A stretch of DNA of 64,000 nt from positions 6,696,001 to 6,760,000 of the forward strand of contig NW_027361868.1 of assembly GCF_039654945.1 (NCBI RefSeq), in the 5' to 3' direction. Positions within the stretch are counted from its first letter, which is position 1; each line of letters begins with the position of its first letter. The notes below the pieces were generated by a model, which saw only the letters and a program-made list of their open reading frames with translations, was not told the DNA's origin and searched no databases. A program made the position numbers and the translations under genes. This document shows, one piece after another, positions 10,379 through 57,973 of this stretch. The DNA comes from Dendrobates tinctorius. Lineage: Eukaryota.

Positions 10379-11314
10379 GTGTGTTACACATTTTATTACT
10401 TGGTGTTTGTTATTGGTACTTGTGCATATGTCCGTGTCAGCAATGCAGAGAGGACAATACAAAGGGTCAAAAACAGCTTAATAGTTAAGCTAGATAAATA
10501 CAATGACCCACACACTATGCCCCTTAGATAATGATCAAGGGAAACTATCCCGGTAAACCTGTGACAGGGGGCTTCATCCGAGAAAATAACATTACCCCAA
10601 TTCTCTGCAGTACAATCCCTGTCCTTTCTGCAATGTTATTTTATCTGATAAAACCCCTTTCAGACTGTTTGGGACAATTGAAGACACTAAAAATGTCCTT
10701 AAGATCAATTTTTGGCACTTCAAACACAATAATACACTTAGGGGTAAAAAAGAATTCACTAATTATCCCCAAAAGAAGCGAACCAACACACCATATATAT
10801 AAAAAATATTATTTTATTGAATATCAAAAATATTCCAATTTTAATACAAATTACAGACTACATAATACCTTACTCATAACATACCCCAACGGGGAAAAAT
10901 GCACAGACCATGAACACGGATAAATAATCCTTCTGTTAATAATCATAATATTCCTGTACAATTCATGGAATAAGGCAACAAGACCAATATTATAATAATC
11001 CTAAATAGGAATCAATCTAACCTTGCCGTTATAAGACGCCACTAAGTTTTATAGTATGCAATCATAAGTCTCACTCTAAATATAAAAATTCAGGGTAATA
11101 AGAAATCCTATGAGGTTATAGAGATACGACATAATACCAGCACCATATAAAGCCTTCATATCGACAAAATCGGGGAGGATTAATCTAACCCCGCTGTGAA
11201 AAGCACCGATACAACATGGGCTAAAATATACTTATAACACATAAAATGACAAGGTAGAAGAGCTATCAAACTGATAATTACCTTAGACCAGATTATGCAG
11301 GTGTAAATAATCCT

Positions 11315-13466: not shown

Positions 13467-13511
13467 GTAACCTGTGGAAGCGCCTTTGCAGCGCGAAACG
13501 ATCGTCGTTGC
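13467..13511 (+). ncRNA. Minimal type-I hammerhead ribozyme motif in the Penelope-like 3' region
   Basis: GTAAC-CTGTGGA-A-GCGC(ctttgca)GCGC-GAAA-C-GATC-G-TC-GTTGC: stems I and II pair, palindromic stem III loop, GUC site; one core change (A6>T). Confidence 0.7.
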
Positions 13512-15046
13512 TATCTCCTTTTTGCACCCGTTCTCCCGCTGATATGCTTTTATAATAAAGCCTTGACTATACCACCCGGTGAGTGCTGTTCTTTTCTACT
13601 ATTTTTTGCTTTTATATTCATTGCCTATCCTTAGGTTAGATCATCAATATGCGATACCCGGCAGCTCAACTGATCTGCTGTTCCCGATGCCGGTGGTGCT
13701 TAATTGGTGCCGCTGGCGGTGGTGCCCAGCTAGGTACTACATATCTGCCTCCTATTCGGGCACAGCTTCACAAGTGAGCATTTCGTGATTGGCTGATTGG
13801 CGTGGCCGCCAGGTATCACACCCCCACCGATCAGATATTGATGACCTATTCTAAAGATAGGCCATCAACTTAAATGTTCTGGACAACCCCTTTAAGCTAA
13901 CTTTCTCTATGATTTATTACATGGGCAGTTGCTCGTGATTACAAACTGACTGCAGGTTTAGGATTAGTGGCCCTTTAACAAAACCAATGGGATACCAAGT
14001 GTTTTTCACTAGTCTTGCAGTGTCTATAAATGTATGACCTATTACCAAAACCTCCTTTCCAGCAGCCTTACAGCTCGGAAGATCCTCACAATTAGTACTG
14101 ACAGATTGGTGAGTACTTTGGCACTCACACGCATTTCAAAACCGTCACTTAGAGAGTAGGAATAACAAACATCAGGCAGACGGGTGACTTTATGCTTTTA
14201 TGGGAAAGGTGAAATTTATGACCCATTCAATCCAAGGCAGAGGTGATAACAGCGATGATTCCTCCGAAGTGTAAAGAACAAAAGACAGGAATGAATAAGC
14301 GAGGATTCACCCTCTGTAGGAAGCATCGCTCATTCTCCTCATCAAGTAAATGCTTAAAATAAGATGATTGGCAAGAGGCAACCTGGATAGGAAGCAGCCG
14401 TGTCCAAGGGTCACTTCCCTAATCCCGGTGTTCAGTCCGGATCAAGAAAGGAAGTGGTCATATGGCCAAGCAGATGTGTCCAGAGAGCGGAGCAACAGAA
14501 GAAAAAACATCTAATACTATTCTTAAGTACTGGATAACATCCATGCAGAGTCAAAAGAATAGATTGTAATTGTTGATGGTTGTCAATGTTGCATTACTTT
14601 ATAAAAAAGTGTTTAATATTTGGGATGTAGGTACCGTAAAAAAAAATGTTGTTTTTGAATCCTATAAAAAGTCATCCAATGTAACCTTTATTACCATTCA
14701 TTTATAGCTAACCGGCCTTACCAAAAATTTTACAATGATATTTCTCAGTTGATCATACATGCAAAATTACAAAATCATTGTGAAAAGTGGCTTACACTTC
14801 AGCGACAGTAGTTATTCCTAGACTGCAACTCGTTTCAGTTGGACTTCCACTTGTCAGCCTGTTGACGAGGCAGACACTCATCAATCTTTCCTGGCAACTA
14901 CACATCTCTGAATCCCTCCGTGGTCAGCTTCTACTTGCCCTCCTCAAGGCTCTGTCTCCCTATCCCCAAGACACCATGGCCAGCTCTATTCTTTTTTTCT
15001 GGCTATTAATGGCAGATCTTCCTCTCCTAGCAAGAAGGGACGGCTT

Positions 15047-15664
15047 TGTAATACTGGTGAGTGTGGACCCACAGCGTCACATGACAGGTTTATCAGTTTA
15101 CCCTGGAGAGGCACGACTAAGTGTTTACTGTGCCTTCTCTAGGGACTCTGATGGTGAGAATAGGCTATGCTGCCTGTAGGTACCAGGCACCACTCTAGGG
15201 CAGTCCCTAGGAAGAGGTACAGGAGAGCGAGAAAGAGGCATAGTCAGTCGGTCCAAGGTCGGTGCTGGCAGCACCGGTTCACAGTACAAAGCCAGAGTCA
15301 GGGATGAAGAAGTCAAATAGGGTAAAGAGGCTGGGTCGATAACGGGAGACAGAATATGAAGTTATGCAAAAACATGGTGCTAGCAGGCTAGGAACCAATG
15401 TTCGGGCAGAGATTGGTAAGAGGAACTGCCTAAAATAGACCCTGCTGGGATAGGCCAGGGAACCTAATGTTTGCAGGTCACAGCAGGGTCAAATTCCTGC
15501 AGAGACCAGCCATGATCCCCTTAAGCCAAATGGAAACCTCTTGCAGTGCTGAGGAGTGCTGACAGAGGCAAACTTAGCGAGATGGCTGTCTGACATGAGG
15601 AGAAGCATAATGACCATGGTGAGAAGGGTGGCGCTGAGGAGGCATGTGAGTTAGCGCCGTCACA
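15047..15664 (-). mobile_element. 3' LTR of a decayed Gypsy element
   Basis: TGTAATA...CGTCACA ends; purine tract AGAAGAGGAGAGTAC directly upstream on the minus strand. Confidence 0.65.
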
Positions 15665-17000
15665 GTACTCTCCTCTTCTTTATGCCAGCTGACAGAGAAA
15701 ATGCTGAAGGAAAGCAGGGGCGTAGCTGTTGTCAGCAGGCTCCCAAATCCTCTCCTCAGGACCCAAACCCTTCCAATTGACCAGAAGCCATCTTGGAATC
15801 CAGGATTTCCTTCATCTCAAGGCACATCCGAAGGACCCTCAGGAACAAGCATAGAGGCAGGAGTTAGTGGCTAAGAGATGTGGTTTAGAACCACCGGTTT
15901 TAAGAGTGAGACATGGAAGGAATTAGGGATCCGTAGGCTCACCGGAAGCTGAAGTCTGTAGGTCACCAGATTGATCTCCCTGAGAACCTTGAATGGCCCA
16001 AGGTACCAAGGAGCGAACTTATAAGCTGGCACCTTCAGGCAAATATTACGAGACGACAGCCAAACTTTATCTCCGGGACAGCAATGGGGCAGAGAGCCTC
16101 TCTTCTTGTCTGCATGGGATTTTGGGATTTCATCCTGTACATGGCCTTAAGGAGGGAGGACGGGGTCAGCTGCCAGATCTGAAGGAAGTTGCCATAACAA
16201 AAATCAGCCGCTGTTACTCCAGAGAAAGCAGACATAGGCGAGGGCACATGAGGATGCTGAGAATAAACAACCAAGAATGGGGATGCTTCGGCAGTCTCCC
16301 CAACGTGGTTGTTGTAGGAAAACTCTGCCCATGGGAGTAGTACCCAGGGGAAGGTAGTTCTCAAGAATCTGATTTACCTGTTCCACTTGCCCTTTAGTCT
16401 GTGGAGGGAACACAGAGTAAAAATCCATCTGTATATGCAGTAAGTTGCAAAGAGCTCTCCAGAATTTAGAATTGAACTAAACCCCACGATCTGAGACTAT
16501 GAGGATAGGAAGGCTGTGGAGCTGAAAACATGCTGGAAAAACTGTGTGGCAAGCTTATGAGGACAGGGTAGACTGAAGAGAGGAATTAAATGAGCCTATT
16601 TGGAAAACTGATCCACCACAACCCAAAATAGTTGTGCAACCCTCAGAGAAAGGGAGATCCCTGATGAAATGGCTATTTGTTGCCAGGGAGCAGAAAGAAT
16701 CGGCAATGGCAGAGGGAGACCAGTAGGCTTGTCCCTGGAGGACTTGTTTCTGGCGCACTGTGGACAGGCGGTTACGAAGTCCCAGACATCATGATCCTTT
16801 ACAGTAATAGCCATCAGAAACGGTGAACAATAAGCTCAACTTGGATTTGTGATTGCAAAACAGAATTTTCCTACTCTTAGAAGTAGAAACAAAAGTCTTG
16901 CCCAAAGGAATGTTTCTTAAAAGGACTGGTCCTGCTTCACTAATACTGGCTGGGATTAGTGAATGATGTGCTGACGCTCCTCCTGACCATTTCTCCTGAA
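15665..17000 (-). pseudogene. Frameshifted Gypsy/chromovirus integrase plus chromodomain remnant
   Basis: Fragments GKTFV..RKIL..NH, DVWDFVTACPQCARNK..KPTGLPLPLP, PQTKGQVEQVNQILE, PWAEFSYNNH. Confidence 0.85.
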
Positions 17001-28345: not shown

Positions 28346-28701
28346 ATAATTATATTTTAGACACACTACTCGTACAAACAAGGCTGCAGAGTACACAGAG
28401 GCTTTATGGCACAGCACTCCGACAGGCAGGGATGCAGAATATACAGGGGCTTTTTGGCACAATACTCCCACAGGCAGGGGTGCAGAGTAGACACAGAGGC
28501 TTTTTAGCACAGTTCTCCCACAGGCAGGGGTGCAGAGTACACAGGCTTTTTGGCACAGTACTCCCACAGGCAAGGTTGCAGAGTACACACAGATGCTTTT
28601 TGGCACACTACTCCCACAGGAAGAGGTGCAGAGGTTTTTGCACAGTACTCCCACTGGCAGGGGTGCAGAGTAGACAAAGAGGCTTTTTGGCACAGTACTC
28701 A

Positions 28702-29815
28702 TGTGGTACTCGCATGCACGGGGGATGCAGTGACTAGCCGGAGATGGAGCAAGCTTATATTCAACTTTTATATATGGATTGTAAGAATAACGGGTAAGCT
28801 GACAATAGTTTTCCACGCAGGGAGGTTAAATAATACACAAATAACTCGATATAAGACTACTTGGCAAGTGCCTGCAACTAGACGGCACGATATGGCCGGC
28901 TGTGAGTCCTCAAACTATAATTAACAACCAACGGAGTGTCACTTATCCTTGTCTGATGTCCTGCAGAGTTGCTGTCCAGGAGGTGTCCGTTCGGCATCTC
29001 AGCCGCTGGGCCCAGCCAATGAAGAGCTGTCGGAGGCTTCAGGTGTTCCTACGCCTAGGTGCAGCGGGGGCGTAACAGGCCCCAGAAGAGTTTCCCAGCA
29101 TCGAGACCGTCCTTCTTGGGGGCGAGGTGGTAGCAGCCGCGGTCTTTGATGGACAGGCCGCAGCAGCGGGATGGAGCCGGGCAGTGGTGGCCACGAGGCT
29201 CAGGGTCTGGGCCGTAGTTGCGGTGTGGAGCATGACAGTGGCGGCCGCGGGTGGCAGCGTATAGGCCGCAGTCGCGGGATGAAGCAGGGCAGCGGCGGCC
29301 GCAGGTGGCAGCGTACAGGCCGCAGCCGCGGAGTGGAGCGAGGCAGTGGTGGCCATGGGTGGCCGCGTAAGGCTACAGCCGCGGGATGGAACGGGGCAGC
29401 GGTGGCTGTGGGTGGCAGCGTACAGGCCACAGCCGCTGTGTGGAATGGAGCAGTGGCGGCCGCGGGTCTCAGCGTCGGGGCCGCAGCCGCACGTGTCAGC
29501 ATTCTGTCTCTTCCTGGCGTCGCTTGGTACCGTCCTCTCCCTGGATCAGGTGAGCCCCTGTTCTGTGTCTCTGGAAAAAAAGGGCTCCCTCCTGCTCTCC
29601 AGGGCCACCTAGGTTCCTCCTTCCTGACTCTTGTCTTTCTCCTCATCGAGTGCCCCCTGCTGGTCTCCTGTTCTCCTTTAATAGTTGCCCCGCACTTTCC
29701 AGAAGAGTCTTTGTCCCGGCCTGTAACTGCTTCCCCGGGATCACACTCCCTGGGGAACCTAAGTGACAGCCCCTTAGTTCCGACACGGTTACACAGTGGG
29801 GTTCTCTCTCCTACA
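28702..29815. mobile_element. TG...CA-bounded insert (probable solo LTR), 4-bp TSD CTCA, with an internal 54-bp GC-rich tandem repeat
   Basis: CTCA at 28698-28701 and 29816-29819; TGTGG...CTACA; about 6 units of 54 bp at 29155-29490. Confidence 0.65.
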
Positions 29816-30744
29816 CTCATACAGGCAGGGGTGCAGAGTACACATAGATGCATTTTTGCACTGTACTCCCACAGCAAGGGGTGCAGAGTAGACACAGAGG
29901 ATTTTTTGCACAGTACTCCCACAGGCAGGGGAATAGAGTACAAGGAGGTTTTTTTGCACAGTACTCCTACAGACAGGGGTGCAGAGGACACACAGCTTTT
30001 TGCACAGTGCTCATACAGACAGGGGTGCAGAGTAATCAGAGGCTTTTTTTGCAAAGTAGTCTCACAGGCAGGGATACAGTGTACACAGAGGCTTTTTGGC
30101 ATAGTACTACCACAGGCAGGGTTGCAGAATACACAGAGGCTTTTTTGCACAGTACTCTGACAGGAAGGGGTGCAGAGAACACAGAGGCATTTTTGCACAG
30201 TATTCCCATGGGCAGGAGTGCAGAGTACACACTGTGGCTTTTGAGAACAGTACTCCCAGAGGCAGGGGTGCAGAATACCCAGAGGCATTTTTGCACAGTA
30301 CTCCCACAGGCAGGGGTGTAGAGTACAGACTGAGGCTTTTGAGAACAGTACTCCCACAGGCAGGGGTGCAGAGGACACGCAGAGGCTTTTCAGCACAGTA
30401 CTCGTACAGACAGAGGTGCAGGGTACACAGAGGCTTTTTTGCACAATACTCCCACAGGCATGGGTGCAGAGTACACAGAGGCTGTTTGCACAGTACTCAC
30501 ACAAGCAGGAGTGCAGAGGACACAGAGGCTGTTTTGCACAGTACTCCCACAGGCAGGGGTGCAGAGTAGACACAGTGGCTTTTTGGAACAGTACTCCCAC
30601 AGGCAGGGGTGCAGAGTTGACACAGAGGCTTTTTGGAACAGTACTCCCACAGGCAGGGGTGCAGAGAACACGCAAAGGCTTTTTGACACAGTACTCATAC
30701 AGATGGTTACAAAGTACACACAGAGGCTTTTTGGCACAGTACTC

Positions 30745-34465: not shown

Positions 34466-36722
34466 GTACCCCCTGTTCTAGGGGGCCACTAGACCCAAAG
34501 GCTTCCAAGGAAACCTAGCATGAAAGACCCTATCCAGTCGATCGGCCCTCAACGATAGAGATGGAACTCATGGTCTCTCCTTTGGACCATATCCTTTCCA
34601 AAGTATAAGGTACTGAAGGAAATTTCAGATCATCTGAAAATGCACAACACTCTAGACTGTCATCGACAGGAGGCGAGGACAATGGTGACTCCACTGAGGG
34701 AACAAATGCCTTCAACAGTCTCTATGGAAGATATTAGAGATGTGGAGAGATGGAGGAAGCTTCAACCTAAATGCCACTGGATTGATCACTTCCAGGACCT
34801 CATGGGAACCGATGAATTTCGGACTTAACTTCGCTGACGGTACCTTAAGTTTATTGTTTCTGGATGATAGCCAGATCCTATCTCCCACCTTAAAGACAGA
34901 ACACGTTCGGCGGTTCTATCAGCCCTCTGTTTTTGGTGAACTTGAGCAACCCCAATATTCCTTTTCAACTTCCTTCTAAACATCCCCAAGCCCAAGATTC
35001 TGTATAGTGACCTCCACCTCTGGACACTCATAATATTTCCTGGAACACTCACCAAAATGGGGATGCAAACCATATTTACAGAAAAATGGTGAAGTTCCAG
35101 TGGATTCATTGACCCAACCATTAAAGGCGAACTCTGCAAGAGGTAGGAATGAGGGCCGGTCCTCCTGCTGAGCACCAATGAAACACACCTCAAAATTTGC
35201 TCCAAAAATAATTAGTACTCTCCGTCTGAGCATTGGTTTCAGGTTGGTAAGCAGAAGAAAAAGACTAGTCAATGCCCAGTTTCTTACAAGAAGCTCTCTA
35301 GATCTTGGGGACATGTTGCTCTCCCCTATGAGACATAATGTTAAGAGGAATTCCATGCAACCTCTTCACATGAAGGATAAACAACCTGGACAGTGTTTCT
35401 ATATTAGGTAAACCTGACAACAGAACAAAATGAGCTTGTTTACTGAAACGGTCAACTACCACTCAGACAACAGTTTTTACATCTGACAGTCAAATCAGTG
35501 ATGAAATCCATGGACAGATAAGTCCACAGTCTTTCCGGAATTGGCAACAGAACGAATACTCCAATATGACTGACTTTAGCGCAGATTTCACAGCTGGATA
35601 CAAAATCTTTAATATACTTACTCATTAAAAGCCGCTAAAAGCGTCTGAAAATAGCTTTCTGTGTAGTTATGAAACCAGGGAGCCACTCAAGACGGAATCA
35701 TGAAACTCCTGTAATAGGTGTGATCTTAAGTAAACAGGTACAAATAGCTTGAACCCTGGAGTGGCGGACAGGGCCGACGACTGAGTTTTACGGATCTCCG
35801 CTTTCAACTCAGAGGATACCACAGAAACCACAATGCCCTTAGGAAGAATGGAGTATGGAGGTTCTGGAGGTGAAACTGAATCAAGACTGCGTGACAGTGC
35901 GTCAGCCTTCACATTCTTATACCCTGGACTGAATGTGATAGAGAGCTTGAATCTAGAGAAAAATAAGAACCATCTGGGATGTCTAGGATGATCAGTGACC
36001 ACAGTGATTTGATTAACTGCCCTCTCCAAAAAGTGCCTCCATTCTTTAGAAGCTAATTTAACAGCGAGTAACTCACGATTCCCGACATCATAATTTCATT
36101 CAGCAGAGGTAAATTTCTTTGAAAAAAATGTACATGGCCACAAATTAATCAGAGTTTTGAGCCCCTGAGATAAATTGGTCCCTACCTTACCTTTGAAGCA
36201 TCCACCTCTACAATTAATGGTTTCCGAAGATTGGGTTGGGTTAGAACAGGACCAGACATAAAATACTTCTTCAATTTTTCAAAAGCCCCAATAGCATCCG
36301 GTGACCAAACTTTGAGATCCACCCCATTACGTGTGAGGTAACTAAGAGGTTTAATAATCTGAGAAAAACCCCTTAATGAATTTCCTGTAATAGTTGGCGA
36401 ATCTTAGAAAACATTGCAATGCTTTCAGGTCAGTAGGTTGGACCCAATCTATTATGGCTTGCACCTTCTCAGGATTCATTTTAAAACCATCAGCTGACAA
36501 AATGTATTCCAGAAATGAAACCTCCTGACCAGAAAAAATACATTTCTCAATTTTCGCAAAGAAAGAATTTTCCCTCAATCTTTGTAATACAACCCGGACA
36601 AGTTCCTGGTGAGAATCCAAATCAGAAGAGAAAATTAAAATATCATCATGGTAAATAACAATACATTTCCTATTACAATCAGAAAAGACAATATTCCTAA
36701 AGTTTTGAAACACTGCTGGCAT
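34466..36722 (-). pseudogene. Frameshifted Gypsy/chromovirus pol remnant (RT C-part, RNase H, integrase, chromodomain)
   Basis: CIVIYHDDILIFS...KIEKCIF..EVSFL, FANYYRKFIKGF, VVTDH, PGYKNVKADALSR, EFHDSVLSG, LPLAEFAFN...STGTSPFF. Confidence 0.92.
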
Positions 36723-36974
36723 AACAAGATTTTTAAAAAAGAAAAAAGTGGTTTGGTACCGTGTTAGCCAGTAGAAAAAAATCTATAAAGCGCTCTCAGT
36801 AAGAGAAACAAAATAGGAATCTTGTGGCTTCATCAGGCTGATATAACAAAATATTTGAAGAAACCTTATTTATTGAAGAGACGTAAGTTGTCTCGAAAGC
36901 TTGCTTTGTAACATCATTCACTAGAACTTGTTAGCCATTAAAAGGTATCACACCCACAAGATTTTTAAATAGAC

Positions 36975-39356: not shown

Positions 39357-41373
39357 ATAGGGAAGTTCGGTAGAGATAAGCAAATCTGCTGAGATTCAGA
39401 TTCGGCAGATCACTCGAATTTGGCAGGGAAATTTGATTTGCGTTGAAGTTTCTCAATGCTAATTAAATGCTCCTTATTATGCTCTGGGGCTGAAAAAACA
39501 AAGAATAAACAAATATTCACCTTGCCTCTTACCTGCTCTACTGCTGTAGCTCGCCACATGGTGTCCCGCACCTCTTCTTCTTCTTCTACCTCTCTGGTGT
39601 TCAGCACCTCCACTTCTTCCTTTCTGGTGCTCAGCACCTCCTCTTCTTTCTTTCTAGAGATCTGCACCTCCTTTTCTTCTTCTGTACGCTGCTCTTGACA
39701 ACTGGATAGGCTGATTGCAGGTATCCTGCTTCTGTGACCTTCAGAAATCAACTGCAAACTGTGGGGGAGTCCAGGCCTACAGCATTCTCGCAGGTGAAAT
39801 GAGGTATTACACAGTTGGGAGGTTCATGTAATTCATAGACATGATCGGTCATCTAGAGTATGAGACATTATGCATATGCGTAAATACAATATGATGTGCG
39901 TTATCAGTTGCACATGGACCATAAAAAAATAGTTAGTTTATGGCTGGTGACTAACTTTACAAAACAATTTGGAAATGTTCTTTATGCAATGGAATATTAC
40001 AGGCAAAGTTGACACTTTGGATTATGGCTAGTAGAAATTATGAGAGATAATGCATGACACATGCAATGCTACATTGGACCCTGTGCTAGATATAGGATAT
40101 AGGACCTTGTATAAAAAAAACTGACTATGAGAAAATGTCTAGTATGAAATAATCTAATACTACCAGAAGATGGGTCCACATGGATGTGTCTTCCAACTTT
40201 TCTTATAGATTCTCTCACCAGCTCTGCTCAGTCTTTAATAAGATCCTTCAACCTTCATAGTTGTTGTTTTTCAGTGAGTGCAGAGATTCTGTGAAGTTTC
40301 AAAAAAAATATGATATCCAAGTATAGGGTGAAATAAGCGGGGCAGATATACCATTGGTGCAACCTATAAGGTGGGTAAGGGGCCACATCCATCCATTTTG
40401 CATTCTGATCAGTTAAAGTGCCCTTTAAAAACATAAATTACAAAGTTTATTATCTATGCACAAAATATAGATTTATAGAAAAAAATTATTACAAAATCAA
40501 TCTGTATCCAGGCAAATGCAGATGTGCATGTATATATAATGTCGTATTTGCATGGAATTTTTTTCCCCTGAGTCTTATATATACAACCGAAGATGTTGCT
40601 GATTATAGTAAAATCCTTATGTTCTGATTATCTTTTTTTGGATAAATTCCAACTGTGATTTTTTTTTTCATGTAAAAAGTGACTTTTTTTAAAATGTAAA
40701 TTTAACTAGCCAGAAGTTGAAATGAGGGCTAACACTTGGTTGGCATGATGGGTAAGCAGTGGGTGTGATGTTACGGTGTGATAAGGCTGCTTCTATGTTT
40801 ATAGTAATATACTGTACAATAAAGGTAACACTTGCTGAATAGAACAAGTTATTATTGTGATGTTGTGAAGGACTTTGTAACAACGTCATGATTACTCCAG
40901 TCATAGAGTACATACTGCCAAGAATGGCTCAGGTTTTCTACTGATGGTACCTGCCAATCAGCCATGGGCAGACTCGGACTGGCCCACCGGGGAACAGGAG
41001 AATCCTCCGGTAGGCCGCCCCGTGAAGAAGTTCTTGTGAGTAGTGCTATTACACTTGAGTCACAATTTGCAGAAAAAGGTATCATCTAATCATTCAATAA
41101 ACAAGCTGATAGGAGTCAGATTTCTGCCCTGTCTATGCAGAGATCTAGACCCTTACATCCTGCAGTCTCCTGCTCTCCGTACACTGCAGGAGAGATTGCA
41201 GAGGAGATTGCTTTTCAGCAACTCTCTCCGGAGGCTAAGTCCTTCATCCCATCCTCTGAGCATGCTCGTGGGACAATCTCTCATTGGAGCTCAGGAGTCA
41301 GGTGCTCAGGTCCTGCTCCTAATTCTATTGGTCCAGCTCAGGGTTATGGAGACTTCCGGAAGGTCCCGTCCAC

Positions 41374-41414
41374 TATAAAAAGTGCGCATGGCCGTTCCGC
41401 CATGCGCTAGTATT
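41374..41414 (+). promoter_or_regulatory. LTR TATA box and predicted transcription start (G41404)
   Basis: TATAAAA at 41374-41380; GCGCTAGTATT begins 30 nt downstream and is complementary to the PBS. Confidence 0.7.
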
Positions 41415-41995
41415 TTCATACTTGCTGCTGTGTGTATTGTGATGGATGCTTGGACTGGTGACAGACTTATTAAGAAACCCCTTCCCTCTGATAATACGTC
41501 TGTGTGAGTGTTTGGGTATCAGCCACTAGCAGCGCTAGCGCCAGCGCGCTTAAGCACCATCTACTTCAGCAGCTAGCGCCCTGCATCACGCTTGCGACAT
41601 AGCGGTGCTTTCTCTGCGGCTCAGTTCACGCCGCGCTGCGGTAGCAGTCCTGTCGGGCGTTCGCAGTTGCGACGCCACGCACCTTATTTCACGGTAGGTC
41701 TAGATGGAGTAGTCCTGTTGTTTAAGGCTACTTCTGTGACCCGGAATACCGTGTCTGTATCGCTGGCTGTCTGTGACCTTGAACAGACTCTGCGTTTTGT
41801 ATGCTTTATGCCCGCAGGTCTGTGAAATATAACAGCTTGCTACAGTGCACTAGGTGCAGTTAACCCTGTGCACACTACCGCCATAGTGCTCTGCCTCTTC
41901 TAGAAGCGGTTTTTCCATCCACCGCACGGTGGACCCCCAGTGGCGAAGGCACTTTATTTATATTTTTATTTGGTGCCTTCCGCCACTCCTAAAAT

Positions 41996-42006
41996 AATAC
42001 TAGCGC
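41996..42006 (+). promoter_or_regulatory. Self-priming primer-binding site (11 nt)
   Basis: AATACTAGCGC, 1 nt after the 5' LTR, is the exact reverse complement of 41404-41414; no TGG tRNA-type start. Confidence 0.8.
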
Positions 42007-42022
42007 CAGGGTCTGGCTGGAG

Positions 42023-43339
42023 ATGGCAGAACAGCAGCAAATTTTGCAGTGTGTGCGACAGCTCGAGGCTCGCTTGACTACCCTTGAGAGGGCTCTCGCA
42101 GCTGCGCAGGCCACGGATGCTGCTGTTCAGGCACTCACAGATGCGGTCGGGCATATGTCCATGTCCACCCTTGCGCCGACAGTTACCCGCCTCCCGTTGC
42201 CCGATAAATACTCTGGGGATGGCGCCTCCTGCAGGGGTTTCATCAGCCAGTGCTCAATACACCTGGAGCTGCTGCCTGCGCAATTCCCTACAGAGCGGGC
42301 CAAGGTAGCCTTTATTATTTCTTTACTGTCGGGCAAGGCGTTGGAGTGGGCTACGCCCCTGTGGGAGCATGGTGACCCCGAGATTCGGACCGCTGCTCAC
42401 TTGCTAGCAGCCATCAAGCAAGTTTTTCTCGGTCCCCGGGTCACCCATGACACCTCTCTACAGTTGCTGGCCTTGTCTCAGGGATCCCTCCCGGTTAGCC
42501 AGTACGCTCTCCGTTTTCGGACACTGGTGTCCGAGTTGGAGTGGTCCGACAAGGCGTTGATCCCTGTTTTCTGGAGAGGTTTAGTGGAGCACGTTAAGGA
42601 TGCTCTCTCCACTAGAGAGATTCCTACCTCTCTGGAGGAGCTAATTTCCATCTCCTCCCGTATCGACCTCCGTTTTTCGGAGCGCGGTATGGAGCGTGCT
42701 CACTCCAAACGGAGAGGTACTCCGGCTCCCAACTTCTTTGAGCCTCTGGAGCTGCCCGAGCCAGAGGTTCTACCTCCCGAGCCCATGGAAGTGTCTCGCG
42801 TCATTTCTGAGACACGTCCGGCTCAAGAGTCGATATGCGGTTGTCACCATCTACACGCTGCTTCCCAGGAACACAGCGCCCCGCAATGCTCTGACTGTGA
42901 GTCGGTAGGCGAGACTTTTGTCCCTCCTCGCCAGCGGCCAAAAATTCTCGCGTGGACACACGCGTCCAATGCGGACGGCCACCGTGGCTATATGCAGACC
43001 ACGAAGTCTCTGGCCGGATCGTATTGGTGGCCGCACAGGGCTCGGGACGTGAAAAAATTAATTCGGGCATGCACCTTATGTGCTCGGGACAGTCTTCCCG
43101 AACGGAGTGTGGCGACGGCCGTCGACACACGGCGGCATTCTCCTAAAACTCCTGCTCCCATTATCTCCCGGGTATCCCTCCTGACACCTGGCGACCTGAC
43201 CTCCGCTGATACTGTCCGTATGTCCCGGTTTTCGGTTTCATCTACCAGGACATCAGGCTCACCTTTTAACGAGTCTGAGGCCTGTGCCACTGTCGGGCAT
43301 AGGCTGGTGGATCGGAGGGTTCAGCGAGGGGGGCCCTAG
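42023..43339 (+). CDS. 438-aa Gag (PEG10/RTL/sushi-like capsid) fused in frame to the integrase HHCC zinc finger and pol C-terminal remnants
   Basis: N-terminal coiled coil; LPLPDKYSGD...CRGFISQC...FPTERAKVAFIISLLSGKALEWA; LSQG...V.QYA.RFR; EPMEV; then ILAWTH......GH.G...T......YWWP....DV......CTLCA; ORF spans PBS to PPT. Confidence 0.9.
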   Translation: MAEQQQILQCVRQLEARLTTLERALAAAQATDAAVQALTDAVGHMSMSTLAPTVTRLPLPDKYSGDGASCRGFISQCSIHLELLPAQFPTERAKVAFIISLLSGKALEWATPLWEHGDPEIRTAAHLLAAIKQVFLGPRVTHDTSLQLLALSQGSLPVSQYALRFRTLVSELEWSDKALIPVFWRGLVEHVKDALSTREIPTSLEELISISSRIDLRFSERGMERAHSKRRGTPAPNFFEPLELPEPEVLPPEPMEVSRVISETRPAQESICGCHHLHAASQEHSAPQCSDCESVGETFVPPRQRPKILAWTHASNADGHRGYMQTTKSLAGSYWWPHRARDVKKLIRACTLCARDSLPERSVATAVDTRRHSPKTPAPIISRVSLLTPGDLTSADTVRMSRFSVSSTRTSGSPFNESEACATVGHRLVDRRVQRGGP

Positions 43340-45903
43340 GAGGGGGGGTAATGTTAGGAGTCAGATTTCTGCCCTGTCTACGCAGAGATTTAGACCCTTA
43401 CATCCTGCAGTCTCCTGCTCTCCGTACACTGCAGGAGAGATTGCAGAGGAGATTGCTTTTCAGCAACTCTCTCCGGAGGCTAAGTCCTTCATCCCATCCT
43501 CTGAGCATGCTTGTGGGACAATCTCTCATTGGAGCTCAGGAGTCAGGTGCTCAGGTCCTGCTCCTGATTCCATTGGTCCAGCTCAGGGTTATGGAGACTT
43601 CCGGAAGGTCCCGTCCACTATAAAAAGTGCGCATGGCTGTTCTGCCATGCGCTAGTATTTTCATACTTGCTGCTGTGTGTATTGTGATGGATGCTTGGAC
43701 TGGTGACAGACTTATTAAGAAACCCCTTCCCTCTGATAATACGTCTGTGTGAGTGTTTGGGTATCAGCCACTAGCAGCGCTAGCGCCAGCGCGCTTAAGC
43801 ACCATCTACTTCAGCAGCTAGCGTCCTGCATCGCACTTGCGACATAGCGGTGCTTTCTCTGCGGCTCAGTTCACGCCGCGCTGTGGTAGCAGTCCTGTCG
43901 GGCGTTCGCAGTTGCGACGCCACGCACCTTATTTCACGGTAGGTCTAGATGGAGTAGTCCTGTTATTTAAGGCTAGTCCTGTGACCCGGAATACCGTGTC
44001 TGTATCGCTGGCTGTCTGTGACCTTGAACAGACTCAGCGTTTTGTATGCTTTATGCCCGCAGCTCCGTGAATTATAACAGAGCTTGCTACAGTGCACTAG
44101 GTGCAGTTAACCCTGTGCACGCTACCGCCATAGTGCTCTGCCTCTTCTAGCAGCGGTTTTTCCATCCACCGCACGGTGGACCCCGAGTGGCGAAGGCACT
44201 TTATTTATATTTTTATTTGGTGCTTTCCACCACTCCTAACACAAGCTAGCCAAGTAAATATTACATAGAAGCAAAAGTAAATTTGTGTACTAGGGACAGG
44301 TTATTTTTACATGTAGCTGAACAGTGGGCCCCAACACTCAATGTTACTGATGAACCTTTGCCAACCCAGTCTGACACTGGCCGTGGAGGTATTTGGAATC
44401 ACTGCGTAATGGGTTATGATTGGAATCTCTTACAGTTGTAACAATTGCAGAGGTAACATTATATTCTAGAGGTGGATAATAATACAAAAGTGGAGTTATA
44501 ATGAACAGTTCGCTGGTAAATAGCTAAGCCATCTTACAATTGCCTTATTTTTAAAGTGGACTCTCCTACTGGATATCCTATCAGGGCATGGGACCATTAT
44601 AAATAAGAGTATACCGCTTAAGGTGTCACTCGATGAGCTGGAGAAAATATCTACTGTGTTGGCGGTTGCAGTGCAACCATATTGTAATGGTCATCACTCA
44701 TTCATTTGAGTGGTTAATATGTCGGGAGTGTAGATCCGTCTGGTTAGGGAAGTTGAAGTCGTTGCGATCAGTCTAACATCAGGTTGACTTCACTGTAAGA
44801 AGGGTTTGTCCAGATGGTACTTTCAGATAGTCTATAAACAAATGCACCATGATGTTGAGTAGCCAAAGAGTTGTGGCTGCAAGATTTCTGACAAATGAGT
44901 ATATACTGAATGAAAATGAATTAAGTCCAATAGGCAGGGGTCTTTCAGATGTCAAGTCACTGAGTAACGAAGAGACTGGCATTAGACTCTATCCACTGTG
45001 AGGCTCAACTCTCAAATCACAGTCTCTACGCAAAGATATTAGTTACTCAGCTGGATTGTACCAGTGGCGTGAGCAACTTTTAGTAACAATGTGCAGTAAA
45101 GTATTGGAACAATCTTTAAGTCTTGCTGTTACTCATAATGTCAGTACACCAGGTGCCCTCTCAAGACAAAGAAGCTGTTGACCAGTAACTGGTTCTCTTG
45201 GTGGAAAAACACCAAAGTCCAGGTGTCTTCCTCTACAGTCGTGTCCTCACTCCTCTTTTGGCTGTCCTTTCTTTCCTGAGCGGTCACAACTTCCTCTCTG
45301 TCACCAAAATAATTTCCTCTCTTTTTTCAAATCCTGAATATTGCACTGACAATACACAGGAGAAGCCCATCAGCCACAATGGCCTTGACTATTCCGAGTC
45401 TCCCAAACTCTCTTTACCTGAAAAACAGCTCTCTAGTTATAGTGCCCTCTTCTGCATAACACTGCATCATTAGTGTAGCCCTGGGCTGCCTAATAGATCA
45501 CTTGCAGTGGTCATTGCACTGACAAGTGGCTATTTAGTATAGTCTGATGGAAGCACATTTGGAAAACTAGGGCATGAACCCTTCAGTATATAACCCTTAA
45601 CTCCCTCTGATAAATATGGACTTTCTGCATGAGATCCACAGGTCATACACCTCGAAGTAACCAATATATGCTAATACCGATGTTGGGAAGGGATGTAGCA
45701 TTGACTACAGAGGCTAACATCAAACGATAGACAAGCATTAATACCACAAATACTGTCAGAGTCATGGGGAAGTAGCAAGGATTATTCAAAGCGAAGCCAG
45801 AAACCAAAACCAAGGTTGATATCTGGAGTATGATATCAAATAGTCAATTAAAGTGAGGAAACAGGAATTCAAAGCAAGAAATTGGCAAAACATGCCAGCC
45901 CCA

Positions 45904-50937: not shown

Positions 50938-53900
50938 CTGTAGACTGTAAGCTCTTAAGGTCAGCAGGGTCCTCTCTCTCTCCTGTAGAGTGTAAGCTCT
51001 TATGGTCAGTGAGGTCCTCTTTATTCTGTAGAGTGTAAGCTCCTATGGTCAGCAAGGTCCTCTCTCTCTCCTGTAGAGTGTAAGCGCTTATGATCAGCAG
51101 AGTCCTCTCTCTCCTGTAGAGTGTAAGCTCTTATGATCAGCGGGGTCCTCTCTCTCCTGTAGAGTGTAAGCTCTTATGGTCAGTGAGGTCCTCTTTATTC
51201 TGTAGAGTGTAAGCTCCTATGGTCAGCAGGGTCCTCTCTCTCTCCTGTAGAATGTAAGCTCTTATGATCAGCGGGGTCCTCTCTCTCTCCTGTAGAGTGT
51301 AAGCTCTTATGATCAGTGGGGTCCTCTCCTGTAGAGTGTAAGCTCTTATGGTCATTGGGGTCCTCTCCTGTAGAGTGTAAGCTCTTATGGTCAGTGGAGT
51401 CCTCTCTCTCCTGTAGAGTGTAAGTTCTTATTATCAACGGGGTCCTCTCTCTCTCCTGTAGAGTGTAAGCTCTTATGATCAGTGAGGTCCTCTCTCTCCT
51501 GTAGAGTGTAAGATCTTATGGTCAGTGGGGTCCTCTCTCCTGTAGAGTGTAAGCTCTTATGATCAGCGGGGTCCTCTCTCTCTCCTGTAGAGTGTAAGCT
51601 CGTATGGTCAGTGGGGTCCTCTCTCTCCTGTAGAGTGTAAGCTCTTACGATCAGCAGGGTTCTCTCTCTCTCCTGTAGAGTGTAAGCTCTTATGGTCAGC
51701 AGGGTCCTCTCTCTCTTCTGTAGAGTGAAAGCTCTTATGGTCAGTGGGGTCCTCTCTCTTCTGTAGACTGTAAGCTCTTATGGTCAGTGGGGCTCTCTCT
51801 ATCCTGTAGACTGTAAGCTCTTACGGTCAGCGGGGTCCTCTCTCTCCTGTAGAGTGTAAGCGCTTATGATCAGCGGAGTCCTCTCTCTCCTGTAGAGTGT
51901 AAGCTCTTATGATCAGCGGGGTCCTCTCTCTCCTGTAGAGTGTAAGCTCTTATGGTCAGTGAGGTCCTCTTTATTCTGTAGAGTGTAAGCTCCTATGGTC
52001 AGCAAGGTCCTCTCTCTCTCCTGTAGAGTGTAAGCTCTTATGGTCAGTGGGGTCCTCTCTCTTCTGTAGAGTGTAAGCTCTTATGGTCAGTGAGGTCCTC
52101 TTTATTCTGTAGAGTGTAAGCTCCTATGGTCAGCAAGGTCCTCTCTCTCTCCTGTAGAGTGTAAGCGCTTATGATCAGCAGAGTCCTCTCTCTCCTGTAG
52201 AGTGTTAGCTCTTATGATCAGCGGGGTCCTCTCTCTCCTGTAGAGTGTAAGCTCTTATGGTCAGTGAGGTCCTCTTTATTCTGTAGAGTGTAAGCTCCTA
52301 TGGTCAGCAGGGTCCTCTCTCTCTCCTGTAGAATGTAAGCTCTTATGATCAGCGGGGTCCTCTCTCTCTCCTGTAGAGTGTAAGCTCTTATGATCAGTGG
52401 GGTCCTCTCCTGTAGAGTGTAAGCTCTTATGGTCATTGGGGTCCTCTCCTGTAGAGTGTAAGCTCTTATGGTCAGTGGAGTCCTCTCTCTCCTGTAGAGT
52501 GTAAGTTCTTATTATCAACGGGGTCCTCTCTCTCTCCTGTAGAGTGTAAGCTCTTATGATCAGTGAGGTCCTCTCTCTCCTGTAGAGTGTAAGATCTTAT
52601 GGTCAGTGGGGTCCTCTCTCTCCTGTAGAGTGTAAGCTCTTATGATCAGCGGGGTCCTCTCTCTCTCCTGTAGAGTGTAAGCTCGTATGGTCAGTGGGGT
52701 CCTCTCTCTCCTGTAGAGTGTAAGCTCTTACGATCAGCAGGGTTCTCTCTCTCTCCTGTAGAGTGTAAGCTCTTATGGTCAGCAGGGTCCTCTCTCTCTT
52801 CTGTAGAGTGAAAGCTCTTATGGTCAGTGGGGTCCTCTCTCTCCTGTAGACTGTAAGCTCTTATGGTCAGTGGGGCTCTCTCTATCCTGTAGACTGTAAG
52901 CTCTTACGGTCAGCGGGGTCCTCTCTCTCCTGTAGAGTGTAAGCGCTTATGATCAGCGGAGTCCTCTCTCTCCTGTAGAGTGTAAGCTCTTATGATCAGC
53001 GGGGTCCTGTCTCTCCTGTAGAGTGTAAGCTCTTATGGTCAGCAGGGTCCTCTCTCTCTTCTGTAGAGTGTAAGCTCTTATGGTCAGTGGGGTCCTCTCT
53101 CTCCTGTAGACTGTAAGCTCTTATGGTTAGTGGGGCTCTCTCTATCCTGTAGACCGTAAGCTCTTACGGTCAGCGGGGTCCTCTCTCTCCTGTAGAGTGT
53201 AAGCGCTTATGATCAGCGGAGTCCTCTCTCTCCTGTAGAGTGTAAGCTCTTATGATCAGCGGGGTCCTCTCTCTCCTGTAGAGTGTAAGCTCTTATGGTC
53301 AGTGAGATCCTCTCTCTCCTGTAGAGTGTAAGCTCTTAAGGTCAGTGAGGTCCTCTTTATTCTGTAGAGTGTAAGCTCTTATGGTCAGTGAGATCCTCTC
53401 TCTCCTGTAGAGTGTAAGCTCTTATGGTCAGTGAGGTCCTCTTTATTCTGTAGAGTGTAAGCTCTTATGGTCAGTGAGGTCCTCTTTATTCTGTAGAGTG
53501 TAAGCTCTTCTGATCAGCGGAGTCCTCTCTCTCCTGTAGAGTGTAAGCTCTTACGATCAGCGGAGTCCTCTCTCTCCTGTAGAGTGTAAGATCTTATGGT
53601 CAGTGGGGTCCTCTCTCCTGTAGAGTGTAAGCTCTTATGATCAGCGGGGTCCTCTCTCTCTCCTGTAGAGTGTAAGCTCGTATGGTCAGTGGGGTCCTCT
53701 CTCTCCTGTAGAGTGTAAGCTCTTACGATCAGCAGGGTTCTCTCTCTCTCCTGTAGAGTGTAAGCTCTTATGGTCAGCAGGGTCCTCTCTCTCTTCTGTA
53801 GAGTGAAAGCTCTTATGGTCAGTGGGGTCCTCTCTCTTCTGTAGACTGTAAGCTCTTATGGTCAGTGGGGCTCTCTCTATCCTGTAGACTGTAAGCTCTT

Positions 53901-56900
53901 ACGGTCAGCGGGGTCCTCTCTCTCCTGTAGAGTGTAAGCGCTTATGATCAGCGGAGTCCTCTCTCTCCTGTAGAGTGTAAGCTCTTATGATCAGCGGGGT
54001 CCTGTCTCTCCTGTAGAGTGTAAGCTCTTATGGTCAGCAGGGTCCTCTCTCTCTTCTGTAGAGTGTAAGCTCTTATGGTCAGTGGGGTCCTCTCTCTCCT
54101 GTAGACTGTAAGCTCTTATGGTTAGTGGGGCTCTCTCTATCCTGTAGACCGTAAGCTCTTACGGTCAGCGGGGTCCTCTCTCTCCTGTAGAGTGTAAGCG
54201 CTTATGATCAGCGGAGTCCTCTCTCTCCTGTAGAGTGTAAGCTCTTATGATCAGCGGGGTCCTCTCTCTCCTGTAGAGTGTAAGCTCTTATGGTCAGTGA
54301 GATCCTCTCTCTCCTGTAGAGTGTAAGCTCTTAAGGTCAGTGAGGTCCTCTTTATTCTGTAGAGTGTAAGCTCTTATGGTCAGTGAGATCCTCTCTCTCC
54401 TGTAGAGTGTAAGCTCTTATGGTCAGTGAGGTCCTCTTTATTCTGTAGAGTGTAAGCTCTTATGGTCAGTGAGGTCCTCTTTATTCTGTAGAGTGTAAGC
54501 TCTTCTGATCAGCGGAGTCCTCTCTCTCCTGTAGAGTGTAAGCTCTTACGATCAGCGGAGTCCTCTCTCTCCTGTAGAGTGTAAGCTCTTATAGTCAGTG
54601 AGGTCCTCTTTATTCTGTAGAGTGTAAGCTCTTATGGTCAGCGGAGTCCTCTCTCTCCTGTAGAGTGTAAGCTCTTACGATCAGCAGGGTCCTCTCTCTC
54701 TTCTGTAGAGTGTAAGCTCTTATGGTCAGTGGGGTCCTCTTTATTCTGTAGAGTGTAAGCTCTTATGGTCAGCGGAGTCCTCTCTCTCCTGTAGAGTGTA
54801 AGCTCTTATGGTCAGCGGAGTCCTCTCTCTCCTGTAGAGTGTAAGCGCTTATGATCAGCGGAGTCCTCTCTCTCCTGTAGAGTGTAAGCTCTTATGATCA
54901 GCGGGGTCCTCTCTCTCCTGTAGAGTGTAAGCTCTTATGGTCAGTGAGATCCTCTCTCTCCTGTAGAGTGTAAGCTCTTAAGGTCAGTGAGGTCCTCTTT
55001 ATTCTGTAGAGTGTAAGCTCTTATGGTCAGTGAGATCCTCTCTCTCCTGTAGAGTGTAAGCTCTTATGGTCAGTGAGGTCCTCTTTATTCTGTAGAGTGT
55101 AAGCTCTTATGGTCAGTGAGGTCCTCTTTATTCTGTAGAGTGTAAGCTCTTCTGATCAGCGGAGTCCTCTCTCTCCTGTAGAGTGTAAGCTCTTACGATC
55201 AGCGGAGTCCTCTCTCTCCTGTAGAGTGTAAGCTCTTATAGTCAGTGAGGTCCTCTTTATTCTGTAGAGTGTAAGCTCTTATGGTCAGCGGAGTCCTCTC
55301 TCTCCTGTAGAGTGTAAGCTCTTACGATCAGCAGGGTCCTCTCTCTCTTCTGTAGAGTGTAAGCTCTTATGGTCAGTGGGGTCCTCTTTATTCTGTAGAG
55401 TGTAAGCTCTTATGGTCAGCGGAGTCCTCTCTCTCCTGTAGAGTGTAAGCTCTTATGGTCAGCGGAGTCCTCTCTCTCCTGTAGAGTGTAAGCTCTTACG
55501 ATCAGCAGGGTCCTCTCTCTCTCCTGTAGAGTGTAAGCTCTTATGATCAGTGGGGTCCTCTCTCTCTTCTGTAGAGTGTAAGCTCTTATGGTCAGCAGGG
55601 TCCTCTTTCCTGTAGAGTGCTAGCTCTTATGGTCAGCAGGGTCCTCTCCTGTAGAGTGTAAGCTCTTATGGTCAGTGGAGTCCTCTCTCTCCTGTAGAGT
55701 GTAAGCTCTTATGATCAGTGAGGTCCTCTCTCTCTCCTGTAGAGTGTAAGCTCTTATGGTCAGTGAGGTCCTCTCTCTCCTGTAGAGTGTAAGCTCTTAC
55801 GATCAGCAGGGTCCTCTCTCTCTCCTGTAGAGTGTAAGCTCTTATGATCAGTGGGGTCCTCTCTCTCTTCTGTAGAGTGTAAGCTCTTATGGTCAGCAGG
55901 GTCCTCTTTCCTGTAGAGTGCTAGCTCTTATGGTCAGCAGGGTCCTCTCTCTCTCCTGTAGATTGTAAGCTCTTATGGTCAGTGGGGTCCTCTCTCTCCT
56001 GTAGAGTGTAAGCTCTTATGGTCAGTGGGGTTCTCTCTATCCTGTAGAGTGTAAGCTCTTATGATCAGCGGGGGTCCTCTCTCTCCTGTAGAGTGTAAGC
56101 TCTTATGGTCAGTGTGGTCCTCTCTCCTGTAGAGTGTAAGCTCTTATGATCAGTGGGGGTCCTCTTTCTCCTGTAGAGTGTAAGCTCTTATGATCAGTGG
56201 GGTCCTCTCTGTCCTGTAGAGTGTAAGCTCTTATGATCAGTGGGGTCCTCTCTCTCTCCTGTGGAGTGTAAGCTCTTATAATCAGCGGGGTCCTCTCTCT
56301 TTCCTGTAGAGTGTAAGCTCTTTTGGTCAGTGAGGTCCTCTCTCTCTCCTGTGGAGTGTAAGCTCTTATGATCAGTGGGGTCCTCTCTATCCTGTAGAGT
56401 GTAAGCTCTTATGATCAGCGGGGGTCCTCTCTCTCCTCTCTCTCCTGTAGAGTGTAAGCTCTTATGATTAGTGGGGTCCTCTCTCTCCTGTAGAGTGTAA
56501 GCTCTTATGATCAGTGGGGTCCTCTCTGTCCTGTAGAGTGTAAGCTCTTATGATCAGTGGGATCCTCTCTCTCTCCTGTAGAGTGTAAGCTCTTATGATC
56601 AGTGGGGTCCTCTCTGCCTCCTGTAGAGTGTAAGCTCTCATGGTCAGTGTGGTCCTCTCTCTCCTGTAGAGTGTAAGCTCTTTTGATCAGCGGGGGTTCT
56701 CTCTCTCCTGTAGAGTGTAAGCTCTTATGATCAGTAGGGTCCTCTCTCTGCTGTAGAGTGTAAGCTCTTATGGTCAGTGGGGTCCTCTCTCTCTCCTGTA
56801 GAGTGTAAGCTCTTATGATCAGTAGGGTCCTCTCTCTGCTGTAGAGTGTAAGCTCTTATGGTCAGTGGGGTCCTCTCTCTCTCCTGTAGAGTATAAGCTC

Positions 56901-57603
56901 TTATGATCAGTGGGGTCCTCTCACTCTGCCTCCTGTAGAGTGTAAGGTCTTATGGTAAGCAGGGTCCTCTCTCTCTCTCTCCTGTAGAGTGTAAGCTCTA
57001 ATGACAAGCAGGGTCCTCTCTCTCCTGTAGAGTGTAAGCTCTTATGGTCAGTGGGGTCCTCTCTCTCTCCTGTAGAGTGTAAGCTCTTATGGTCAGTGGG
57101 GTCCTCTCTCTCTCCTGTAGAGTGTAAGCTCTTATGGTCAATGGGATCCTCTCTCTCCTGTAGAATGTAAGCTCTTATGGTCAGTGGGTTCCTCTCTCTC
57201 TTGTAGAGTGTAAGCTCTTATGGTCAATGGGATCCTCTCTCTCCTGTAGAATGTAAGCTCTTATGGTCAGTGGGGTCCCTCTCTCTCCTCTAGAGTGTAA
57301 GCTCTTATGATCAGTGGGGTCCTCTCTCTCACTTGTAGAGTGTAATCTCTTACGGTCAGCGGGCTCCTCTCTCTTCTGTAGAGTGTAAGCTCTTATGGTT
57401 AGCAGGGTCCTCTGTCTCCTGTATAGTGTAAGCTCTTATGGTCAGTGAGGTTCTCTCTCCTGTAGAGTGTAAGCTCTTATGGTCAGTGGGATCCTCTCTC
57501 TCTCCTGTAGAGTGTTAGCTCTTATGGTCAGCGGGGTCCTCTCTCCCTTTCTCTCCTGTAGAGTGTTAGCTCTTATGGTCAGTTGGGTTTGCTCTCTCCT
57601 CTC
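50938..57603. repeat. 6.7-kb satellite, ~39-45-bp unit CCTGTAGAGTGTAAGCTCTTATGGTCAGCGGGGTC(CT)n, with higher-order repeats
   Basis: Directly visible array; identical ORF translations 1081 bp apart. Confidence 0.97.
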
Positions 57604-57841: not shown

Positions 57842-57973
57842 NNNNNNNNNNNNNNNNNNNNNNNNNNNNNNNNNNNNNNNNNNNNNNNNNNNNNNNNNNN
57901 NNNNNNNNNNNNNNNNNNNNNNNNNNNNNNNNNNNNNNNNNNNNNNNNNNNNNNNNNNNNNNNNNNNNNNNNN
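57842..57973. other. Assembly gap (N run)
   Basis: 132 N characters. Confidence 1.

Follow-up and report, generated by a model that had tools for sequence, protein, structure and literature searches.

A minimal Ty3/gypsy LTR element in Dendrobates tinctorius with a single ORF for a predicted Gag::integrase zinc-finger fusion

Introduction

Non-autonomous long terminal repeat (LTR) retrotransposons that provide their own Gag are documented in plants, where TR-GAG elements are short, carry LTRs, a primer binding site (PBS), a polypurine tract (PPT) and a single Gag open reading frame (ORF) without enzymes, are mobilized in trans, and transpose in Arabidopsis ddm1 (PMC8704663, which cites Chaparro et al. 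2015 for their description). Among animals, the mouse IAP IΔ1 element is the best-known example of a functional ORF made by deletion and fusion. This endogenous retrovirus of class II has lost 1.9 kb in a single deletion, and its gag-pol fusion promotes retrotransposition in cis while helper proteins act in trans, as summarized in PMC6466679, citing Saito et al. 2008. Here we describe a vertebrate element that resembles both, a 3.1-kb LTR retrotransposon at positions 41107-44241 (forward strand) of a 64,000-nt stretch of the Dendrobates tinctorius genome (GCF_039654945.1, contig NW_027361868.1, 6,696,001-6,760,000), which is referred to below as the window. A previous sequence-only reading had singled out this element as a candidate for a Gag-only LTR system in which a sushi/PEG10-like Gag is fused to the zinc-binding HHCC domain of integrase (IN).

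Further groups are relevant to the comparison. Members of the Tf1/sushi group (sushi-ichi, Amn-type V-clade chromoviruses) are defined by a full Pol, and self-priming in place of a tRNA primer is a known trait of these elements in yeast and vertebrates (PMC6317226). The PEG10, RTL (SIRH) and LDOC1 genes are single-copy host genes without LTRs that share the capsid fold of such elements. To our knowledge, no PEG10/RTL/LDOC1 gene carries an HHCC domain. Altered Gag proteins that act on the particles of a related element are also known as restriction factors, examples being Ty1 p22, Fv1 and enJS56A1. Within the open-access literature that we searched, no Gag::HHCC element has been described.

Results

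One ORF fills the interior of an LTR element

The element consists of a 5' LTR of 888 nt (41107-41994, +), an interior of 1357 nt and a 3' LTR of 890 nt (43352-44241, +), and it is bounded by a 5-bp target-site duplication (TSD), CAAGC, that abuts the LTR ends at 41102-41106 and 44242-44246 (both +). The paired LTRs are 97.1-97.2% identical, with 25 mismatches and one 2-nt gap across 888 aligned nt; they start with TGATAGG (5') and TGTTAGG (3') and end with CCTAAAA and CCTAACA, respectively. These direct repeats and the TSD are those of an LTR retrotransposon, with the canonical TG...CA termini complete in the 3' LTR only, the terminal dinucleotide of the 5' LTR (TG...AA) having mutated from CA. 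A single ORF of 438 aa plus stop (42023-43339, +) accounts for 1317 of the 1357 interior nt and terminates as ...RGGP-TAG immediately before the PPT. The alignment and the ORF coordinates confirm the LTR pair, the TSD and the single-ORF interior that the sequence-only reading had reported. No second copy of the LTR or of the interior was found elsewhere within the 64-kb window.

The ORF begins with a long, coiled-coil-like helix (aa 2-43; 42026-42151, +), followed by a capsid of the sushi/PEG10 type with its N- and C-terminal domains (aa 55-230; 42185-42712, +), a decayed zinc-knuckle remnant that contains the first deletion junction (aa 261-295; 42803-42907, +), the integrase N-terminal HHCC zinc-binding domain (aa 296-358; 42908-43096, +), and a tail composed of remnants around three further deletions and ending in RGGP (aa 359-438; 43097-43336, +). 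In Pfam, the capsid is matched by Retrotrans_gag, Ty3_capsid and DUF4939 across aa 55-212, and Integrase_H2C2 covers aa 300-355 with an E-value of 1.8e-13. At E<=1, the ORF gave no Pfam match for protease (PR), reverse transcriptase (RT), RNase H, rve, SH3 or chromo.

A full-length relative reveals four in-frame deletions

To place the missing domains we used a full-length relative from Ranitomeya imitator, L002 (CAUEEQ010023292.1, 5975-12024), which is the locus of P0011, a 1405-aa gene model returned by a HMMER scan of 1.84 billion representative proteins. Its layout comprises an LTR, gag from 6001, PR-RT-RNase H-IN-chromodomain in one frame (7864-10935), a PPT and a 3' LTR. L002 is nearly complete, apart from a single stop codon within the SH3-like part of integrase and a gag that is split within the zinc knuckle by about 0.8-1 kb of non-coding sequence; the public model P0011 joins it to a short-chain dehydrogenase gene.

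Four in-frame deletions were mapped against the L002 Pol frame in a protein-level alignment. Deletion 1 leads from the knuckle remnant to ESV|GETFVP, just before the HHCC domain, and removes PR, RT and RNase H; deletion 2 (CARDSLPER to SVATAVDTRR) removes the DDE core of integrase, deletion 3 (PAPII to an HVSLLKP-like segment) the SH3-like domain, and deletion 4 (GHRLVDRR to VQRGGP-stop) the chromodomain. The tail aligns to the L002 pieces ...VSADTHRRPAPVF..., ...HVSLLKP...SRFSESSAGTSGS...EFEVNAIVG..., and ...QGGGG. We state these junctions at the protein level only, because a nucleotide-level mapping (spliced global alignment of the window interior with L002) was untrustworthy at ~65% identity and was set aside. 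The order PR-RT-RNase H-IN(-chromodomain) is present in L002/P0011 and missing from the window element, which is classified as a derivative rather than an autonomous Tf1/sushi member because the Pol enzyme domains are absent. The loss of PR, RT, RNase H and the DDE core with the frame kept, as well as a tail made of pieces of the integrase tail and the chromodomain start with a GGP-stop ahead of the PPT, had been proposed before from the window sequence, and the alignment with L002 agrees on each point.

Three insertions share the same junctions

Two additional copies were retrieved from D. tinctorius. A word search returned P0001, a 438-aa protein that aligns to the window ORF without gaps at 69% aa identity and has the same Pfam architecture; its locus, L001, is situated within an intron of a VWA-domain gene and has a 3' LTR together with a 5' LTR that is truncated at its 5' end. 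The other copy, L003 (JAYMGB010000010.1, 13508-16439), was located through P0164, a longer isoform of P0003, and is a complete element with LTRs at 13508-14301 and 15647-16439 that are 98.6-99% identical and with the TSD GGTGG. L003 shares with the window element the leader that follows the 5' LTR and all four deletion junctions, and its ORF has been damaged by two in-frame 6-nt deletions, a 2-nt frameshift at codon 141 and the loss of the stop. A word search with aa 255-438 and a profile search with the three copies, both in databases that hold predicted proteins only, brought up P0001 and P0003 and no further members; given this content, the searches say little about copy number.

All four junctions are common to the three copies (window, L001 and L003), which sit at unrelated loci, and the window flanks match neither the L001 nor the L003 locus. 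Perfect 5-bp TSDs are found in two of the three copies and differ between them (CAAGC in the window, GGTGG at L003). LTR identity across the three copies is 93-99%, which at the D. tinctorius rate (PMC11152451) puts the insertions very approximately at 2, 6 and 14 My. Because the same junctions recur in copies that each have LTRs of their own and lie in unrelated flanking sequence, there were at least three separate insertions in the deleted form; the element has replicated as such. This is the pattern, several copies that agree in their junctions but differ in their TSDs, by which the sequence-only reading had expected replication to be recognized, here in a small sample. The three copies agree at each of the predicted zinc ligands of the HHCC domain (H313, H320, C350 and C353). 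They all lack the canonical CX2CX4HX4C knuckle, in agreement with the decay of this region noticed earlier.

The L003 copy has also entered the public annotation. The RefSeq models named MFAP2 isoform X1/X2 (P0164 and P0003) begin within its ORF at about aa 223, continue, the stop being lost, across the PPT as far as U3 of the 3' LTR and then splice to MFAP2 exons, and represent either a chimeric transcript of transposable element and host or an annotation artefact. If the chimeric model is supported by RNA, then the L003 copy is transcribed.

Capsid and HHCC are the constrained segments

Selection was assessed segment by segment with pairwise Nei-Gojobori (NG86) ratios of non-synonymous to synonymous divergence (dN/dS) among the three copies, whose comparisons are not independent, and with a binomial test of non-synonymous versus synonymous differences. 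For the whole ORF, dS was 0.6-0.8 and dN/dS was 0.23-0.30. The ratio was 0.10-0.16 in the capsid (p 1e-12 to 1e-16), 0.17-0.20 in the HHCC domain (p 5e-5 to 3e-4) and 0.14-0.28 in the N-terminal helix. In the tail it was 0.46-0.57 (p 0.01-0.06), and in the knuckle remnant, which has 38% aa identity between copies, 0.29-0.61 (p 0.01-0.23, non-significant in two of the three comparisons). As judged from these ratios, the capsid and the HHCC domain evolve under strong purifying selection. The synonymous divergence of the HHCC segment among copies (dS 0.9-1.3) is not reduced, which places the constraint at the level of the protein rather than of an RNA or DNA signal; a cis-acting reason for retaining this segment, such as a central PPT, was rejected on this ground.

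Under neutral decay, the window ORF taken alone would remain open with a probability of about 0.28-0.58, in line with the caveat of the sequence-only reading that a lone ORF of this size may stay open by chance. The case for selection rests for this reason on the comparison between copies. A single copy, or dN/dS near 1, had been named beforehand as grounds for abandoning the proposal; the family has three copies, and both the capsid and HHCC lie far below 1.

Predicted structure of the Gag::HHCC protein

An AlphaFold2 model of the 438-aa protein was built from a 45-sequence alignment. The model consists of a long N-terminal helix (aa 2-43) and a two-lobed capsid (aa 67-230), both with a predicted local distance difference test score (pLDDT) mostly above 90, a disordered linker (aa 240-297) within which the knuckle remnant (aa 261-295) has a pLDDT below 50, a helical HHCC domain (aa 298-357, pLDDT 80-96) and a disordered tail (aa 361-438). 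Foldseek matched the capsid to the C-terminal capsid domain of PEG10 (7lga) with a TMt of 0.94, and also to the Ty3 capsid (6r24) and to Arc/PNMA2 capsids. The PDB sequence search agrees with the Foldseek matches and gave an E-value of 1.7e-6 for 7lga; together with the Pfam matches, 7lga and 6r24 assign the capsid to the sushi/PEG10/Ty3 type. The HHCC domain superposes on the N-terminal domain (NTD) of PFV integrase with an rmsd of 1.3 Å over 55 residues, and it also matches the NTD of Ty3 integrase in the intasome (7q5b), both by Foldseek. The domain is thus predicted to adopt the fold of an integrase N-terminal domain. The Pfam, PDB and Foldseek matches uphold the assignment of both folded modules, sushi/PEG10-like capsid and integrase HHCC, that had been made from the sequence alone.

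Cis-acting signals shared with autonomous elements

The U3 region of the 5' LTR contains a TATA box, as read from the sequence, TATAAAAA (41374-41381, +), which is kept in L003 and appears as the variant TATATAAA in L002. It always lies 30 nt upstream of a putative self-primer and start of R, GCGCTAGTATT (41404-41414, +), and this spacing is the reason for placing the predicted transcription start at the self-primer. The self-primer is a perfect 11-nt complement of the PBS, AATACTAGCGC (41996-42006, +), which lies in the 28-nt leader (41995-42022). The leader, ATACTAGCGCCAGG(G/A)TCTGGC, is conserved in the window element, L001, L003 and the full-length L002, and the pairing of self-primer and PBS recurs in the window 3' LTR (43649-43659), L003 and L002, that is, in four LTRs. 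The predicted 5' end of the transcript is thus complementary to the PBS, and no tRNA-type PBS is present, as in self-priming Tf1/sushi elements. An inverted repeat, GCGCATGGC...GCCATGCGC, lies at 41380-41410 between the TATA box and the self-primer and is likewise conserved in the window 3' LTR, L003 and L002; its sequence would allow a hairpin at, or slightly ahead of, the 5' end of the transcript.

The PPT, AGGAGGGGGGG (43338-43348, +), is located directly at the ORF stop and ahead of the 3' LTR. Both PBS and PPT are kept in L001, L002 and L003. A stretch of 35 nt that takes in the PPT and the beginning of the LTR (43328-43362) has 100% identity with L002 10940-10974, despite saturated synonymous divergence in the coding region. 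L002 hence shares with the window element the leader and PBS, the 11-nt self-primer, the PPT and the LTR ends. Since autonomous elements have the same cis signals for RT, RNase H and integrase to act on, mobilization in trans would be expected. The search for an autonomous partner, proposed along with the original description, accordingly yielded an element with the same PBS, PPT and LTR termini. At 59% Gag identity, though, L002 stands too far from the window element to serve as its true helper.

Discussion

A probable parasite of full-length elements

Having copied itself in the deleted form, and with both folded parts kept by selection, the window element appears to be a working parasite of complete elements and not a dead fragment. 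We consider it probable that it represents a Ty3/gypsy family that is non-autonomous, producing Gag::HHCC itself and relying on autonomous relatives for enzymes. Four in-frame deletions would have taken PR-RT-RNase H, the integrase core, the SH3-like domain and the chromodomain from an ancestor that kept all of the parts that act in cis (LTRs with TATA box, self-primer, PBS, PPT and TG...CA ends) and one ORF for the capsid, a disordered linker, the integrase HHCC domain and a disordered tail. In this form the family has inserted repeatedly over roughly 2-14 My, going by LTR divergence, and protease, RT/RNase H and integrase would be supplied in trans by autonomous relatives. The Gag::HHCC protein would be needed for propagation, most probably by co-assembling with Gag-Pol of the helper on the RNA that encodes it (cis-preference). 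The HHCC domain, in turn, may grip the helper integrase or intasome, or may substitute a zinc module for the lost nucleocapsid knuckle; the sequence-only reading had suggested that it might recruit or poison the Pol of a helper. The more specific proposal that Gag::HHCC is a purpose-built hijacking adaptor, with which particles of the parasite would capture integrase or intasomes of the helper, or in which HHCC would stand in for the knuckle, is a tentative one, which we consider less likely than not.

Several observations weigh against a functional, helper-dependent family. By the ratios given above, the knuckle remnant appears to be near neutral, and the tail only weakly constrained. The autonomous relative L002 is remote, with 59% aa identity in Gag, 48-51% in HHCC and saturated dS. 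Three copies were retrieved, two of them via predicted-protein databases that hold open ORFs only. The youngest copy, L003, has a 2-nt frameshift in gag, which either arose after insertion or else means that copies with a broken gag can still be mobilized. Weaker support for constraint comes from gap events, which are far denser in the LTR pairs (10-17 per ~780 nt) than in the ORFs (0-3 per 1300 nt), with zero indels in the tail or knuckle remnant among the three copies, but this contrast is inflated by the same bias toward open ORFs, whereas dN/dS is not.

Among the alternatives, a dead derivative in which the deletions followed insertion and the ORF stayed open by chance would agree with the neutral-decay estimate for the window copy considered alone; it is extremely improbable given the same four junctions in three independent insertions, which have their own LTRs and differing flanks and TSDs, and dN/dS of 0.1-0.2 in the folded domains. 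Domestication as a host gene like PEG10, RTL or LDOC1 is suggested by the PEG10-like capsid, by the annotation of P0001 as protein-coding in D. tinctorius, and by the intact ORF at the old L001 locus, where the 5' LTR is truncated. However, all three loci have LTRs and two have TSDs, LTR identity is 93-99%, the loci are unrelated, and the ORF still terminates at the PPT of a complete element, whereas domestication would predict a single LTR-less host locus, a state seen at none of the three; we regard this explanation as very unlikely, although a single old copy such as L001 could be co-opted by the host.

Two other explanations accept the selection signal and read it differently. Truncated or altered Gag proteins can poison assembly, and Gag::HHCC might act chiefly as an inhibitor, a dominant-negative capsid or integrase decoy that damps the autonomous family, in a form of copy-number control comparable to Ty1 p22 or Fv1-type Gag restriction, and rides on, or benefits, the host. 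An isolated integrase NTD could compete for intasome contacts, and a protein that has lost its nucleocapsid knuckle may package poorly. Against this stands the fact that the family went on inserting, as seen from the TSDs and the LTR ages, which requires productive particles; a pure inhibitor would stop its own spread, and the copies examined give no sign of a fixed, LTR-less host locus. We therefore judge a mainly inhibitory role unlikely. Slightly less likely still is that the selection signal is borrowed, with template switching onto co-packaged autonomous RNA overwriting gag and HHCC so that the fusion protein itself is not needed. Recombination between co-packaged retroelement RNAs is common, the P0001 HHCC is equally similar to autonomous P0011 (64%) and to the copy P0003 (64%), and the weakly constrained parts are exactly those without a selected counterpart in a helper. 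Yet segment dS is 0.55-1.3 among the copies, as opposed to 1.4 to saturated against the only autonomous relative, every lineage has kept the four junctions and the length of 438 aa, and neither the word searches nor the full HMMER search found a closer autonomous donor.

Comparison with described systems

The analogy with plant TR-GAG elements drawn by the sequence-only reading holds in functional terms. As in TR-GAG elements, terminal repeats enclose one ORF without enzymatic domains, and several insertions of the same deleted structure are found (three copies). The window element departs from the Gag-only state, since an HHCC domain under selection is fused in frame; it also belongs to a vertebrate and to the Tf1/sushi lineage, and lacks the nucleocapsid knuckle. 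Functionally, IAP IΔ1 is the closest system, being an internally deleted element with an in-frame Gag-Pol fusion ORF, as is the window element. The two differ in class (endogenous retrovirus versus Ty3/gypsy) and in the number of deletions (one versus four), and the cis action reported for IAP IΔ1 would have to be assumed for the window element, where the purifying selection is consistent with a cis requirement. The capsid type and self-priming are those of the Tf1/sushi group, to which L002 is further linked by its single Gag-Pol reading frame and chromodomain integrase. PEG10, RTL and LDOC1 have a homologous capsid fold, and the window family differs from them in being multi-copy and mobile, with LTRs and TSDs. 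In contrast to Ty1 p22, Fv1 and enJS56A1, the window element itself keeps transposing.

The window element offers a natural, minimal vertebrate Ty3/gypsy case in which selection keeps exactly two folded modules. It may be useful for asking how a parasitic element gains preferential packaging and access to helper enzymes, and what the integrase N-terminal domain does apart from the catalytic core. It exemplifies the intermediate type from which PEG10/RTL-like, Gag-derived host genes could arise, and bears on the LTR-driven genome expansion of poison frogs (PMC11152451).

Retention of the HHCC domain in stripped-down sushi-like elements may be recurrent, to judge from the sequence of an independent deletion derivative of another sushi-like family. 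This locus, L004 (Logan SRR5149504, 124-2304; P0002), has a contiguous 726-aa ORF that encodes Gag, an intact knuckle, protease, HHCC and the first strand of the integrase core, with a tail running into the LTR; the 90% cluster of this ORF has 7 members. Fish models with HHCC in partial architectures (P0089, P0090, P0042, P0070 and P0079) were left out of consideration, as their shape may come from predicted introns.

Other sequences in the window

An Rfam scan of the 64-kb window gave no match. Tandem repeats include a 43-bp satellite of ~153 copies with 86% match (50938-57600), downstream of which lies a run of N (57842-57973), and GC-rich minisatellites with 48-54-bp and 30-bp units (28385-30744, 7598-8001 and 9704-10089); the long ORFs without Pfam matches on both strands at 29171-30675 are attributed to these minisatellites. 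Dead elements at ~16.8 kb and ~35.7 kb had been cited earlier for comparison of the HHCC motif. Degraded Ty3/gypsy remnants are indeed present there, one of IN and chromodomain (15698-16793, -) and one of RT-RNase H-IN (35060-36770, -), but they belong to distant families, with 33-36% aa identity to P0011. An intact 340-aa ORF at 11972-12994 (-) encodes a Tc1/Sleeping-Beauty-type transposase with HTH_SB, HTH_Tnp_Tc3_2 and DDE_3 domains, and its sequence suggests that it possibly derives from a recently active DNA transposon.

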